Assembly: GCA_001600695.1 (NCBI GenBank)
Contig: BCKQ01000013.1
Coordinates: forward strand, 250,045-314,044
From: Ascoidea asiatica JCM 7603
Taxonomy: Eukaryota > Fungi > Ascomycota
Length of the DNA: 64,000 nucleotides
Direction of reading: 5' to 3'
Positions within the stretch are counted from its first letter, which is position 1, and each line of letters starts with the position of its first letter. The notes below the pieces were generated by a model, which was given only the letters and a program-made list of their open reading frames with translations, was not told the origin of the DNA and ran no database searches. The translations under genes were made by a program, and so were the position numbers. Shown piece by piece: positions 18,608-26,859 of the stretch.

Positions 18608-19831
18608 TTAAAAATTTGCAGAAAGACGATTTGCAACAGATTGAATAAATTCTTCAGTTGTAACATAACTTGAACGATCAGTTTTACCTTGAACTAAAGC
18701 TAAATCTTTAGTCATAATACCATCAATTTGAACAGTATCAATAGTTGCTTTTTCTAATAATTCACCAAATTTAACAACATCAGGAGTTTGATCTAATTTA
18801 CCTCTTTGAATAATACCTCTTGTCCAAGCAAAAATACTTGCAATTGAATTTGTTGAAGTTTCTTCACCTAATTGATGTCTTCTATAATGTCTTGTTACAG
18901 TACCATGAGCAGCTTCAGCTTCAAAAGTTTTACCATCTGGAGTTACTAAAACTGAAGTCATTAAACCTAAAGAACCAAAACCTTGAGCAACAATATCAGA
19001 TTGAACATCACCATCATAATTTTTCATAGCAATAATAAAACCACCTTTTGATTTTATCATTTGTGCAACCATATCATCAATTAATCTATGTTCATACCAA
19101 ATTCCAGAATCTTTAAAAAGTTTTGAATATTTTGTATCATAAATATTTTGAAAAATATCTTTAAATCTACCATCATATTTTTTTAAAATTGTATTTTTTG
19201 TTGACATATATAAAGGTAATTTTCTTTCTAAAGCTAATTTAAAAGAAGCTTCTGCAAAACCAGTAATTGATTCATCAGTATTATACATTGATAAAGCAAC
19301 ACCAGAAGAAGTATAATTATAAACAGGAATTTCCATAATTTTTGAACCATCTTTTGGAGTAAAAACTAATTTTAATTCACCAGGACCTGGTATTAAAGTA
19401 TCAGTTGCTTTATATTGATCACCAAAAGCATGTCTACCAATAATAATTGGTTTATCCCATTGTGGTACAATTCTTGGAATATTTGGTATAACAATTGGTT
19501 CTCTAAATACAGTACCACCTAAGATATTTCTAATTGTACCATTTGGACTTAACCACATTTTTTTTAAATTAAATTCTTTAACTCTTTGTTCATCAGGAGT
19601 TATAGTTGCACATTTTACACCAACTTGATATTTTAAAATTGCATTTGAAGCATCAATTGTAACTTGATCATTTGTTTGATCTCTATATTCAATACCTAAA
19701 TCAAAATATTTTAAATCAATATTTAAATATGGTAAAATTAATAAATCTTTAATTAATTTCCAGATAATTCTGGTCATTTCATCACCATCCAATTCAACTA
19801 TTGGATTTTTAACAGTAATTTTTTCAACCAT
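18608..19831 (-). CDS. IDP2: NADP-dependent isocitrate dehydrogenase, non-mitochondrial
   Basis: [43 protein letters not shown]. No presequence. Neighbour of DPH5, as IDP2 is in S. cerevisiae. Confidence 0.95.
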
Positions 19832-20339
19832 TTTTAGAATTTAATTTAATTTAATAAGTAATATGTATGCATAAGAGATTATTAATATTTATAATGAATA
19901 TAAATATATGTGTATATATATGAAGATGATATTGATATAGAAAATGATATTGAGATATATATATTAACTAATATCTAATAAGTGATAAGTGATAAGTGAT
20001 AAGTAATAAGAAAAGGGAAATAAAAGTGAAAAGTTTTGTAAAGGATTATTGAGAATATTTATATTTATATTTATATTTATAATATATTTATCAAAAAAAG
20101 CAAAAAATAAAAGATACGGATTGCAGTTACAGTGGAGATAAACGAGTAAAAGTAAATCTTACATTATTTAACCTTTAAATATTTGAATATTTGAATTTTT
20201 GGATCTTTGAATAAATTTTAATGGTGATTTTAATGATAGTTTTGGTGGTAGTTTTGCATTTATTTTCATTTCTTATTTCAGTTTAAGCAAAATTCAACTC
20301 AACTCAATTCTTTTTCTTTTTCTTTTTCTGTTTATTTTT

Positions 20340-21200
20340 ATTCTGCCAATCTCTCGAGCGTCGACTTCTCCCGTTTCCAGCGGTAAAAAGAGGTGTGTGT
20401 AGCAGCTCTGGGAAACTGGCAACTGGCAACTGGCAAATCTCTTCACGCTGTGCTTCGACCCCGGCTCCATCATCGGCATTGTATTGTTTTGTGTGAGTGT
20501 CCCGATCATTGCAGGGCTGCAACTTGTTTCTTCACATGTCCCTTTGTCGGATCTGTAAGCACATAAACAAACCGTTTCCCTTCCTCGGACTCCCCGCTGC
20601 GCAGTAAAAGCACTAAAACCGCTAAAGGCATCGGATTTCGGACCGTGTCGACCAGATCAGCCAGGGTAATTGGCCCATTTCCAGGGGTGCGAGAGATGTC
20701 TAGTGTCACATGACACCTGCAGAGCTGGCGGTTTTGCTGCCGTGTTTCTGTTACTCTGCTTAGTAATGGAGCTGCCTGGGCCTTCCTCTGAGTTTCTCTC
20801 CGGTGTTTTTGGAAATTTACCCGAGCAGCACTCCAGTAGTTTGCATCCACAAAGCTGGTGTCGGCCTGGCTACCTCGCTACTTCGCTGCTTCCAGCCTTG
20901 GCTCCAATTAACCTTATCAACAAGACCTTGGTAACAGCCTGAGAAGTCTTAGCGGAACTCCCCACCCTAACAAGCCTAACAAGCCTAACACCGACCACCA
21001 TATGAACTAACGTTACCGCCGCTGCTTTTGCTTCGTTTCTTTTTTCTTCTAACGTGTCTGGTTTCATTTCGATTATTTCTGTTAATTGCAACGGTTGTCA
21101 ATTAATTTTTCTTTCGCACACCACATTTCTACCCCAGAACAGCACTTCACTATAAATGGGCCACCCCATCTTTGAATCGGGTTTGAATCCAGGTTTGTGG
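20340..21200. promoter_or_regulatory. Long GC-rich upstream region of IDP2
   Basis: Visibly GC-rich block with many CGG/CCG triplets, GTCACATGAC near 20705 and TTACCCG near 20817. The overlapping short ORFs lack host codon usage. Confidence 0.45.
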
Positions 21201-21266
21201 GTCCTGATCTATTTATTAATACACAATTACTATTATTATTTACTATTATTATTGTTGTTATTATAA

Positions 21267-22136
21267 TCAATTATCAATAATTTCCAATTTTTGATCATCA
21301 ATAACATCTTGTTTAAATTTTTCTTTATCTTCACAAAATGGATATAAATATTCTAATTCTAAATCATGAACTTGTTTACCTAACATAACTAATGAATGTA
21401 ATGGTTTACCAGATTCATATTCACTTAATTCTTTTAATGTACCAGCTTTAAAACATTCTTCATCTGATCCTAATCTAGAAACTCCAATACATGGTGTATT
21501 TTCATTATAACAATTTTCATTTCTATTTTCTTCAATTTCAATCATTTGTTTGGCACATTCTTCAATACTCATATATCTTGGATCTTCATAAATTTTATTA
21601 CCTCTCATAATATTCTCAATTGTTTGTTCTTTAACTTTAATATCTAATAAAATTAAAGTATGTAATCCAATTTTTCTATTTTCTTTAATTTTATCATACC
21701 ATGAATCTGGTCTCCAATTTTCTGTAAAAAAAACCATAGAAATAGTTTGACCAAATTTATATAATTGTAATCCACATGCTCCAATACCATTCATAATTGA
21801 TGCATTATGAATAGTTTTAACTTTAATATTTAATTCTCTAGCTCTAATAATTAAATCTGTATGAGTTGTAGCTCCAAATGGATCTCCAACAACTAAAAAT
21901 CCAATATCTTCTTTATCTCCATTTTTTAAAATTTCATCTGATTCACTCTCCACCATATCTCTATCTGCCAATATTATTTCTTTATTATAATATTTTTCTA
22001 ATCCTTTTTTATTCGTTGACATTAAAATACTTGTGTATCCTTCAAGATAAACTCTTTTACATTTCTTAACTGCTTCAAGTCCACGTACTGTTATATCCTT
22101 TTCATGAGCTAATCCTAATCCAATAACATACAACAT
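21267..22136 (-). CDS. DPH5: Diphthine methyl ester synthase
   Basis: [53 protein letters not shown]. Confidence 0.97.
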
Positions 22137-23200: not shown

Positions 23201-24886
23201 ATGAAAATGAATAATGATGAATCTGCTCATAAAAGTAGGAAAAGGTCAAGAGTGAAAAATTCTCAAAATTCTCAAAATTCTTTAAATTCTTTAAATTCTC
23301 AAATTGATAATGATTCAAATAGAAAATTTTATGTCTTATCTAAAAATAATAATCAAAATAATAACATAAATAATTTATCTAATTTATCTAATTTAACTAA
23401 TTCAAATAATCATTCAAATCATTCTAGTCATTCAAATAATTCAAATTTAGTCCTTCAAAATCAATCAAACCTTTTAAATTCTCAAAATAATGTTTATCAA
23501 AATACTCAACAACTTAATCAAATTCAACATCAATTATATAATAAAGTTTATTCAAGTTTAGAAGAAATGTTATTTGCTTTAAATATAGATTATAAAACTT
23601 TTCAATCTTATCAACATGCTAAAAATTTCTTAGATCAATATAATTTATCAATTAATAATTCAAATGCAAATATTAATATTACAAATTCTTCAAATACAAA
23701 TCTTAATATTAATAATTTATCAAATGCAAATGTTAATGTTATAAATAATAATATAAATAATAATATCAATACAACAACAAATACAAATACAAATAATAAT
23801 AATAATAATATTAGTACAAGTACTTTAACTAACAACAACAATAGTTCTTCAAATATAAATAATCCTTTTACCAATCAACTTTTAAATGCAAGTTTAAATT
23901 CAGTAATTCCTTCAAGAATTAATCATATTAGTCAAATATCTGATTTCACAAATTTATCAAATTTAAATAGTCAATCAAATTTAAATAATTTAAACAACTT
24001 AAATAACTTAAATAACTTAAATAATTTGAATAGTTTAAATAATATCAATAATATAAGTAATTTAAATAATTTAAGTTTTTCAAATTTATCAAATTTATCA
24101 AATTTACCTTTAATTTCAAATAATTTATATAATCATCAAAATAGAAGTCAAATTTTTTCAAATTCTTCTTCAACAAATACTTCTATTTCTTTACAACCAA
24201 AAAATATTTATAAAATTTTTACTTGTGGTTCTGCAAGAAAAATTCCAACTTCAAATACAAATGAAAGAATTTGTTGTTATTCATTTTATATAATTCCATT
24301 AAATATTAAAAAATCTGGTAAATTAGAAATTTCTCATAATTCAAATTTTAATATTGAATTTGATTATTCAACAAAAAGAGCTGATTTATATTCAATTTTA
24401 AAAGCTTTATATGAAATTGATAATGATATTTCAATTTCAATTAAAAATCATAAATTTATAAAATCTTTTCAAATTATTACAAATGATCAAATTTCTTGTA
24501 AATTAATTTCAAATTCTTATCAAAAATATTATAATTTAATTAAAAAATCTCAATATTGGACAACTGCAGATTCAAATAATTTATTAAATAATGCAATAAT
24601 TTCTAATTCTTCAAATAATAATAAAGGTACTTATAAAGTTAGTGATTCTGTTTTGACAAGAAAATTTACTGAATGTATTAATAAAAATAGTAGAAAATAT
24701 ACTGAGATTTTAGTAAATTCAGTTAAATTAATTTATAAAGTTAATCAAATTTATGAAAAAAATGATTTACCTGAATTACAAATTAGAAGTTTTATTAAAG
24801 CTGATGATACTGAAGTTGAATCAAATAATATTGCATGCGAATTAGTTAAACAAGCTTGTAAATTTTTTGGTGCTCAAGATAGTTGA
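23201..24886 (+). CDS. RNase H1-like protein, predicted catalytically dead, with Asn-rich low-complexity regions
   Basis: Collinear degenerate Rnh1 motifs: KFYV...KVYSSLEE..YKTFQSYQHAKNFL (hybrid-binding domain), IFTCGSA, STKRADL, FQIITND, IKADD, SNNIACELVKQA. Confidence 0.75.
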   Translation: MKMNNDESAHKSRKRSRVKNSQNSQNSLNSLNSQIDNDSNRKFYVLSKNNNQNNNINNLSNLSNLTNSNNHSNHSSHSNNSNLVLQNQSNLLNSQNNVYQNTQQLNQIQHQLYNKVYSSLEEMLFALNIDYKTFQSYQHAKNFLDQYNLSINNSNANINITNSSNTNLNINNLSNANVNVINNNINNNINTTTNTNTNNNNNNISTSTLTNNNNSSSNINNPFTNQLLNASLNSVIPSRINHISQISDFTNLSNLNSQSNLNNLNNLNNLNNLNNLNSLNNINNISNLNNLSFSNLSNLSNLPLISNNLYNHQNRSQIFSNSSSTNTSISLQPKNIYKIFTCGSARKIPTSNTNERICCYSFYIIPLNIKKSGKLEISHNSNFNIEFDYSTKRADLYSILKALYEIDNDISISIKNHKFIKSFQIITNDQISCKLISNSYQKYYNLIKKSQYWTTADSNNLLNNAIISNSSNNNKGTYKVSDSVLTRKFTECINKNSRKYTEILVNSVKLIYKVNQIYEKNDLPELQIRSFIKADDTEVESNNIACELVKQACKFFGAQDS

Positions 24887-25539
24887 CCAAACATTAAACA
24901 TAACATAATTTTTTATACACTATCCTCATATCTTTTATAATATTTTTATTGTGTCATGATATTATTCGCTTCATTTTATTCTCTTCATTTACCTTTTCTC
25001 ACCTTTTCTGCTTTTTTCATATTTTTGTTTTTTGTTTTTTGTTTTTGTTTCTGTTTGTTGTTTTTTTGTTTATTTATTTATTTATTTCCCCTGGGTTATT
25101 CATTTTTGCTTTGTCATTATTTTTCATAAAATGTATCTCATCTTTTTTTAATAACTTTTTCATTTTTTCTTTTTTTCATCAAATGCAAATTATACACATT
25201 TTCAAAATAATAAAATTTGAAAGGCTTTAAAAAATCTCTTTTTCATTTTTTTTCTTCAAATCGTAAAGTTTAAACACAAAACCTGTATATTTTTTAGACA
25301 ATAATACTCAGATAATAGAAAAATATAATTATGTAAAATACGAATAAATTCATTATTGAAAACTTTAAAAGTTAAAAAAAATATGCAGAAATAAATATAC
25401 TCTTAAGAAAAATAGATATGTGAAAATGACATGACATTAAAAATAATAAGTGAAACAATCATAACAAAATGAAAAAAATTAGCAAAAGGAGAAAACTGAA
25501 AAAAACAAAACAAAAAAGAAATATAAGTTTAAACTCAAA

Positions 25540-26859
25540 CTATAAAGATTGAAGGGATTTTAATGCTAAGACAACAACAGTTATAATTGCAGGTAAAGAA
25601 AAAACGACATAAGACCAAAATAAAACTCCAGCCATTTCATTTTGATAACATTCATTTATTTGACAAATTTGAGAAACTTGTAAAGCAGGAGGAGATATTG
25701 ATAAAATAAAAACAGTAATTAAAAAAATTGGATCAGAAGCATTTGGAATTGAAGTATATTTAACAATAAAAAGTATTGAAGGTAATAAAAAAAAAGCAGG
25801 TATTAACATTCTTGAAATTACTGAAGCAAAAATTATTCTTTTATAATATGGAGTTGCAGGAGGTACATCTTTTGAAGGATATAAATTTGCTCCAAGAACA
25901 ATTAAAACTAATGGAACAGATAAAGCACCTAATTGAACAGTTGCAGAAGTGAAAGTATTTTGTATGAAACCATTATTTTCGAATAAGATATTTTTAATTC
26001 GTTGAGAACATGAAACAAGAGTAGCTAAAATCATTGCATATAATGGGGGATTCATATAATTTAATACTTTATGAAAATATTTATTTAAAAATCTTTTAAT
26101 GATTGGAATTGTATTTGAATTTAAGCTTTTAGAAGAATTGTTTATATTATTAGGTATTAATGGAGTATTTTCATTTGAAATTAAATTTGAATCTTTCGAT
26201 GAAGAAGGTATTAAAGAAGAATGTGAACTTTGATCTTCTTGATATTCTTGATCTTCATCATCATTATTGGTATTATCATCATTTAATCGATATAAGATAT
26301 TTTTATCAACTTTTTTCAAAAGTGTATTAAAACCCCAAGACCATCTTAATATTTGACCAATTTGATTATAAATTAAGAGATATAAAACAGATCTTGCAGC
26401 AATTTTATCAGGAGTATCATTTGGAATTTGATCCCAACTTAAATGAGGTAAAGTATAAGATAAAGATAAAGTTAAAGAAACAGGTAATGAAAATGAATTA
26501 CAAAAAACAGAATTTGCAATAACAAAATTAGTTTCAGGTTTATTTAATTTCAAAATCCTAGAAATTATTTTTGAAATAATATATGATATTGTTAAAGATA
26601 AAAAGAAAAAAAGTGGAATTATAATTAATTGTACTAATTTTTTAAATGATAAAGTATTTGCTAATTGAGTGAAAATTAAAGCTGGAGTTAGTATTGAAAC
26701 ATTTAATTTTGATATTTGTTTTTGAGTATTTGAATTAATGAATTTAAATTTTGCAGCAATAAAACCTGAAAAGGAAATTAAAACAATTTGTAAAACTGCT
26801 TGAAATGTTAAAAAACATATTTGAATTATATCTAAATGAGAAGAATTTGGATCTAACAT
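25540..26859 (-). CDS. Auxin efflux carrier / PILS family ER transporter (YBR287W-like)
   Basis: About 10 TM segments, LTPALIF..LA, NSFSLPVSL, LRWSWGFN, MNPPLYAM, VPLVLIVLGANL, SPPA. Confidence 0.9.
   Translation of the reverse strand: MLDPNSSHLDIIQICFLTFQAVLQIVLISFSGFIAAKFKFINSNTQKQISKLNVSILTPALIFTQLANTLSFKKLVQLIIIPLFFFLSLTISYIISKIISRILKLNKPETNFVIANSVFCNSFSLPVSLTLSLSYTLPHLSWDQIPNDTPDKIAARSVLYLLIYNQIGQILRWSWGFNTLLKKVDKNILYRLNDDNTNNDDEDQEYQEDQSSHSSLIPSSSKDSNLISNENTPLIPNNINNSSKSLNSNTIPIIKRFLNKYFHKVLNYMNPPLYAMILATLVSCSQRIKNILFENNGFIQNTFTSATVQLGALSVPLVLIVLGANLYPSKDVPPATPYYKRIIFASVISRMLIPAFFLLPSILFIVKYTSIPNASDPIFLITVFILSISPPALQVSQICQINECYQNEMAGVLFWSYVVFSLPAIITVVVLALKSLQSL

Follow-up and report, generated by a model that had tools for sequence, protein, structure and literature searches.

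Can an RNase H1 gene that has lost its catalytic residues still encode a functional protein? The question is raised by an open reading frame (ORF) in a 64-kb stretch of the Ascoidea asiatica genome, here called the window. The original prediction described the product of this ORF as an intact pseudo-RNase H1 whose catalytic carboxylates are replaced, two of them by cysteines. RNase H1 is the enzyme by which the RNA of RNA–DNA hybrids is removed. We refer to the gene as pseudo-RNH1.

Genomic context and orthologue

18608–22136, minus strand: isocitrate dehydrogenase (IDH) and DPH5-like genes, syntenic anchors that match Ascoidea rubescens in order and orientation (88% and 77% identical)
23201–24886, plus strand: pseudo-RNH1 ORF, 561 amino acids, apparently intronless (the 5′ half lacks a consensus splice donor, and the orthologue is a single 426-codon ORF)
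23228–23257, plus strand: putative basic NLS-like patch, residues 10–19

The ORF listing and translation showed that the reading frame of pseudo-RNH1 is open throughout its 561 codons, as had been claimed. The frame contains no CTG codons, so the choice of genetic code is irrelevant to its translation. The basic patch HKSRKRSRVK pointed out in the original prediction was located close to the N-terminus, and its role in nuclear localization is putative. The A. rubescens orthologue contains a K/R/S-rich patch immediately upstream of its hybrid-binding domain (HBD), which cannot be aligned with residues 10–19.

A search of 1.84 billion representative sequences returned a single relative of pseudo-RNH1, ASCRUDRAFT_68413 of A. 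rubescens (E = 2.9e-54), which is located in the same block next to the IDH and DPH5 genes. A word search for homologues returned none, and the annotated orthologue of 294 residues is shorter than the length window of that search. The real ORF of the orthologue apparently begins 132 codons above the annotated start and encodes 426 residues in a single frame, with a contiguous, intronless HBD. The late annotated start hides the HBD of the orthologue, and the adjacent DPH5 model of A. rubescens also appears to be truncated at its N-terminus.

Pseudo-RNH1 stands alone, surrounded by housekeeping genes, and occupies a syntenic position in the two species. No reverse transcriptase, integrase, or terminal repeats linked to pseudo-RNH1 were found, which sets the gene apart from the RNases H of retroelements and viruses; matches of its model to viral RNase H reflect the common fold. 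A linkage to tRNA genes was also looked for, and there is no tRNA gene within the 64-kb window. Synteny with A. rubescens ends directly 3′ of pseudo-RNH1 (24886–26859), where the neighbour is a membrane-protein gene in A. asiatica and an FAA-hydrolase gene in A. rubescens. The kinases next beyond the break are not orthologous between the two species.

Pseudo-RNH1 is a descendant of RNase H1

24200–24883, plus strand: domain with the RNase H fold and without the catalytic tetrad, residues 334–561, net charge +10, pI 9.15 (profiles, hhalign, fold models)

Searches of Pfam and of PDB sequences with the protein and its parts gave no match, so homology to RNase H1 had to be demonstrated in another way. 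A profile of outside homologues scored 13.2 bits against the C-terminal domain, which is no better than chance (shuffle maximum 13.4). With a profile built from the five RNH1 copies of the same genome the score was 49.2 bits, and none of 1000 shuffles exceeded 14.9. The hhalign comparison of the domain gave 96.4% with an E-value of 1.4e-9 over 165 columns. A genome-wide scan with a profile of the own-paralogue type recovered the five paralogues and pseudo-RNH1 (E = 8e-4), and nothing more.

The fold agrees with the profiles. The Atlas model of the orthologue, which is independent of the alignment used here, matches RNase H with TM-scores of 0.63–0.67 by query and 0.82 by target, and language-model features match RNase H at 0.91–0.92. 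An AF2 model calculated with a 47-row alignment has the RNase H topology (pLDDT 76.7), finds RNase H domains as its best fold matches, and superimposes on human RNase H1 with a Z-score of 11.8 and an rmsd of 3.9 over 141 residues; this evidence is circular, because the input alignment contained RNase H1 rows. A single-sequence AF2 model (pLDDT 32) was uninformative and was discarded.

Pseudo-RNH1 is about 23% identical to the RNH1 paralogues of its own genome and appears to have in common with them a lineage-specific extension of helix D. In a tree, the two orthologues and the five own paralogues are located on one side of a branch (90/91, unstarred), a grouping that is tentative in view of the long stem and biased composition. 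The orthologue pair itself has a very long stem and short tips (0.47 and 0.49).

The part of the protein preceding the RNase H domain contains a degenerate HBD and a linker:

23327–23344, plus strand: first strand of the degenerate HBD, FYVLSK (canonical FYAVRK); the corresponding FYVLSH starts the PF01693 match of the orthologue
23345–23545, plus strand: N/Q/S-rich in-frame insertion, about 61 extra residues in the HBD hairpin (motif spacing 73 versus 12 residues), absent from A. rubescens
23546–23632, plus strand: second part of the degenerate HBD, residues 116–144, with W43>L, F58>Y, K59 kept, and K60>T (HBD profile, human HBD row)
23633–24199, plus strand: Asn/Ser-rich low-complexity linker, residues 145–333 (Asn is 32% of residues 1–333)

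The N-terminus of the orthologue matches all 44 positions (1–44) of PF01693 with 20.0 bits (cut-off 21) and an E-value of 8.3e-4. In the second part of the HBD, 15 of 28 residues are identical between the two species. The linker is not conserved and comprises only about 54 residues in A. rubescens. The HBD insertion is at the site of a phase-1 intron in the four HBD-bearing paralogues, and we considered that it might be an exonised intron. This origin appears less likely, since there is no donor and the HBD of the orthologue is contiguous; a low-complexity expansion is the simpler reading.

The presence of both RNase H1 domains, the HBD in the orthologue and the RNase H domain, settles the ancestry proposed in the original prediction: the ORF at 23201–24886 is an RNase H1 descendant.

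The catalytic tetrad is absent

24224–24226, plus strand: C342 at human D145 (TGT in both species)
24272–24277, plus strand: C358–C359 on strand 2, kept in both species
24383–24385, plus strand: D395 at human E186 (GAT)
24482–24487, plus strand: N428 (AAT), which corresponds to a naturally occurring D210N change, followed by D429 at human S211; an 18-residue run without differences between the two species starts here
24803–24805, plus strand: D535 in the human H264 column, in a loop region aligned with less certainty
24836–24838, plus strand: C546 at human D274 (TGC; TGT in the orthologue)
24857–24859, plus strand: C553, kept in both species and also present in the paralogue at C4:1188k

The assignments above are based on the 47-row alignment, in which the tetrad columns contain D, E, D, and D in 41 of 41 outside RNase H1 homologues. 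Human D145/E186/D210/H264/D274 correspond to C342/D395/N428/D535/C546 of pseudo-RNH1. The DEDD carboxylate tetrad is thus absent from A. asiatica and A. rubescens alike, which both have C, D, N, and C at its positions. The four codons named in the original prediction are all correct, and so is the loss of the histidine of the GH loop: its column contains H in 41 of 41 outside homologues, D in A. asiatica, and N in A. rubescens. The register of the alignment is fixed by the invariant flanking residues G343, R393, A394, T427, W453, N542, and A545, which are kept. A register in which D429 replaces D210 was rejected, because T427 and S432 anchor the segment without gaps and place N428 in the D210 column.

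The D210N variant of human RNase H1 binds hybrids and does not cleave them (PMC6868509). Because this change alone inactivates the human enzyme, we infer from the known enzymology that canonical hybrid cleavage by pseudo-RNH1 is very unlikely.

The catalytic site might have been retooled, with C342, C546, D395, and D429, and perhaps E547, binding a thiophilic metal (Mn2+ or Zn2+) and supporting nuclease activity or another reaction in particular circumstances. In RNase H1, metal A is bound jointly by D145 and D274. The two species agree at all four site residues, and positions 395 and 429 still have acidic side chains. Asp-to-Cys changes in RNase H-like DDE enzymes can be rescued by Mn2+ and not by Mg2+; however, activity returns weakly, at about 1% for E152C, and this was shown for single changes (PMC1693899). 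In pseudo-RNH1 all four residues and the histidine are changed, including the D210N equivalent, and substrate contacts are lost. We consider a retooled site improbable.

The cysteines could also serve regulation, as a structural zinc site or a redox switch in a non-catalytic protein. Six of the seven cysteines (342, 358, 359, 433, 546, and 553) are conserved in the two species, several of them with a synonymous change, and these include both substituted positions highlighted in the original prediction, C342 and C546. However, a small hydrophobic residue such as Cys in the core of a β-sheet or helix needs no metal, C553 is also found in an active paralogue, and the nucleus and cytosol are reducing. 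There is little likelihood that these residues form such a site or switch.

The substrate-binding surface is altered

Ten substrate contacts of human RNase H1 were used for comparison (PMC5363678). The equivalents of N151, N182, Q183, F213, W221, and S233 are replaced in both species, and the only conservative changes among the ten are T181>S and W225>Y/W; R179 is variable in active enzymes too, and the N240 column is unreliably aligned. In the HBD, the binding residues W43/K59/K60 are L, K, and T in both species. The joint WKKD mutation, which includes W43, K59, and K60, abolishes binding by human RNase H1 (PMC6868509). Because most substrate contacts and the W43 and K60 positions of the HBD are replaced, canonical hybrid binding by pseudo-RNH1 appears doubtful. 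The proposed role as an R-loop reader is thereby weakened as far as the canonical mode of binding is concerned.

The former substrate face is nonetheless the best conserved region, identical between the species at 24 of 28 positions, versus 94 of 176 (53%) elsewhere (Fisher p = 8e-4), and it includes an 18-residue run without differences (p = 0.003); this comparison is suggestive only, since the segments belong to the core of the fold, where conservation partly serves folding, and since they were chosen after the alignment had been seen. The net charge of the RNase H domain is +10 in A. asiatica and +15 in the orthologue, compared with an outgroup median of +2. The basic charge may be a trait of the genome, as the active paralogues, with net charges of +3 to +12, are equally basic.

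The conserved face may be an interface for a partner, in which case the RNase H fold would serve as a protein-interaction module without a role in nucleic acid binding. Such a scaffold would explain why, in the HBD and the RNase H domain alike, most of the canonical contacts to nucleic acid have given way to residues that are fixed in two species, and why the HBD tolerates a 61-residue insert. However, the HBD remnant is still conserved and retains the equivalents of Y29 and K59, and the new conserved residues of the face are basic. We regard a pure scaffold as rather unlikely, although it is the strongest of the rival explanations.

Pseudo-RNH1 is under purifying selection

The RNase H domains of the two species are 58% identical (118 of 204 residues). 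Differences at codon positions 1, 2, and 3 amount to 0.29, 0.25, and 0.60, and thus are mostly at third positions. Because synonymous divergence is saturated, the constraint is expressed as pN/pS and not as a numeric dN/dS: pN is 0.275, pS is 0.775, and pN/pS is 0.36 (CI 0.28–0.45), which overestimates dN/dS. The corresponding values of the neighbouring IDH and DPH5 genes are 0.13 and 0.19. Given 58% amino acid identity where synonymous sites are saturated, and the same C/D/N/C substitutions in A. rubescens, pseudo-RNH1 is under purifying selection, as expected for the retained gene envisaged in the original prediction. The long stem and short tips of the tree are those of a gene that changed rapidly once duplicated and came under constraint thereafter.

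These data bear on the possibility that pseudo-RNH1 is a decaying relic without function. It is extremely divergent from RNH1, and the family turns over in the genome, where one copy contains a stop codon. Yet the frames of 561 and 426 codons are open, whereas about 24 stops are expected in shuffled DNA, and the synteny and sequence identity described above have been maintained. A relic is already largely refuted and is the least probable of the explanations by far.

The RNH1 family of A. asiatica

Searches of the A. asiatica genome (20.3 Mb, 71 contigs) with PF00075 picked out five RNase H1 genes other than pseudo-RNH1, four of which have an HBD recognised by PF01693. The canonical RNH1, with HBD and DEDD tetrad, is located on the same contig (C13:185989), about 86 kb from pseudo-RNH1; it was represented by its second exon in the searches. 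Two more copies with long linkers, C4:29536 and C4:1188589, have an intact DEDD tetrad, and RNH201 is present with its motifs. The suggestion that this yeast may lack RNase H1 activity is therefore contradicted by its genome. Word searches of A. rubescens over 94–633 residues did not return a canonical RNH1, which may be a limit of the annotation or search and is no evidence of absence.

In a further paralogue (C4:1182433–1182909), only the first catalytic Asp is changed, to Ala; the other site residues, like the HBD, are largely intact. This copy is a candidate second, younger-looking pseudo-RNase H1, and on its sequence it would be a better candidate for a true R-loop reader than pseudo-RNH1. 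The copy at C2:1975867–1976295 lacks the HBD, its frame is interrupted by one TAA, and its basic protrusion is shortened; it is likely a truncated pseudogene. The distance to the nearby tRNA-Gly(TCC) gene is a few hundred bases. The DEDD-intact paralogue at C4:1187202–1189059 has a very acidic D/E/S linker and is interrupted by an assembly N-run, across which the frame differs.

The four HBD-bearing copies have a common phase-1 intron just 3′ of the FYAVxxG motif. In the canonical RNH1 this intron (C13:187068–187200) is 133 nt long and has the non-consensus donor GTTCGT; the donors of the other paralogues at the same position are GTAAGT, GTGTGT, and GTGAGT.

The genome carries at least 54 RVT_1 and at least 77 RVT_2 matches, many of them broken or containing stops. 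In Saccharomyces cerevisiae, RNase H limits Ty1 (PMC4214602). From their co-occurrence, we hypothesise that the retrotransposon load is linked to the RNH1 expansion. A more specific scenario would place the cysteines at the centre: within a six-member RNH1 family expanded in a retrotransposon-rich yeast, Cys and Asp residues would have turned the carboxylate site into one that holds a thiophilic metal, or into a redox switch, and that controls hybrid binding or conditional cutting, for example of retrotransposon intermediates. We give this scenario a low probability.

Proposed origin and role of pseudo-RNH1

The analysis shows that pseudo-RNH1 descends from RNase H1, has two domains, carries the substitutions, is syntenic and constrained, and occurs in a genome that also has intact RNH1 genes. 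To this part, and to the reading that the gene is a functional paralogue of RNH1 that lacks normal RNase H activity, we assign a probability of about 0.9.

An origin and a mechanism can be proposed. RNH1 was duplicated in the Ascoidea lineage, probably as a retrocopy, as suggested by the absence of the intron of the four HBD-bearing paralogues and by the dispersed position of the gene. Fast change after the duplication (D>C, E>D, D>N, loss of H, D>C) would have abolished RNase H catalysis with Mg2+, and purifying selection would then have fixed the altered protein before A. asiatica and A. rubescens diverged. The old substrate groove may have been rebuilt with new basic and polar residues: R346, K347, K392, K550, and a conserved basic insert near residues 494–501. 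The rebuilt groove could bind hybrids or other duplex nucleic acids non-canonically, and the bound nucleic acid might be shielded or partners might be recruited to it. The low-complexity linker would act as a flexible tether, and the cysteines would fill or stabilise the former metal pocket. We speculate that retrotransposon intermediates or R-loops are plausible targets. Non-catalytic binding of nucleic acids by the rebuilt groove is the most likely mechanism, and we propose it tentatively, at somewhat less than even odds.

Comparison with known systems

As a rule, fungi and animals have one RNase H1 gene, and its product is strictly catalytic. Pseudo-RNH1 resembles eukaryotic RNase H1 (S. 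cerevisiae Rnh1 and human RNASEH1; PF01693 and PF00075) in its HBD–linker–RNase H architecture, fold, and invariant structural residues, and it probably descends from the RNH1 of its own lineage. Unlike eukaryotic RNase H1, it has C/D/N/C in place of DEDD, has lost the His, and has most substrate contacts as well as W43 and K60 replaced; it is also intronless, contains extra inserts, and scores below the Pfam cut-offs. On its sequence, pseudo-RNH1 does not belong to the class of active RNase H1 enzymes, as their tetrad, His, and binding residues are missing, yet it is clearly derived from RNase H1.

The nuclease fold has been reused without catalysis before, in the ancient cases of the reverse-transcriptase connection domain and the pseudonuclease domain of TEFM. 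Pseudo-RNH1 differs from both in being a stand-alone, genus-level paralogue of a cellular RNH1 with an HBD remnant. Asp-to-Cys substitutions of metal ligands in an RNase H-like fold are known from DDE enzymes (HIV integrase D64C, D116C, and E152C; metal rescue in TnsA, Tn10, and RAG1). Those are single laboratory changes, whereas pseudo-RNH1 combines two Cys with D>N and E>D.

In the open-access literature, we found neither a natural dead paralogue of cellular RNase H1 nor an RNH1 expansion in Ascoidea. Pseudo-RNH1 is known from one genus only and from sequence, which limits the reach of the finding. Dead versions of RNase H1 are familiar as laboratory tools, namely the D210N R-loop sensor and the non-binding WKKD control. 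Pseudo-RNH1 is similar to these engineered proteins in having Asn at D210 and non-canonical residues at W43 and K60. Unlike them, it is natural and fixed in two species, where it has been kept beside active copies and a D>A copy, and its binding residues are nearer to those of WKKD than to those of the D210N sensor. Expression in S. cerevisiae offers a way to assay pseudo-RNH1, which is a natural test of whether the RNase H1 scaffold plays non-catalytic parts in the control of R-loops or retrotransposons.
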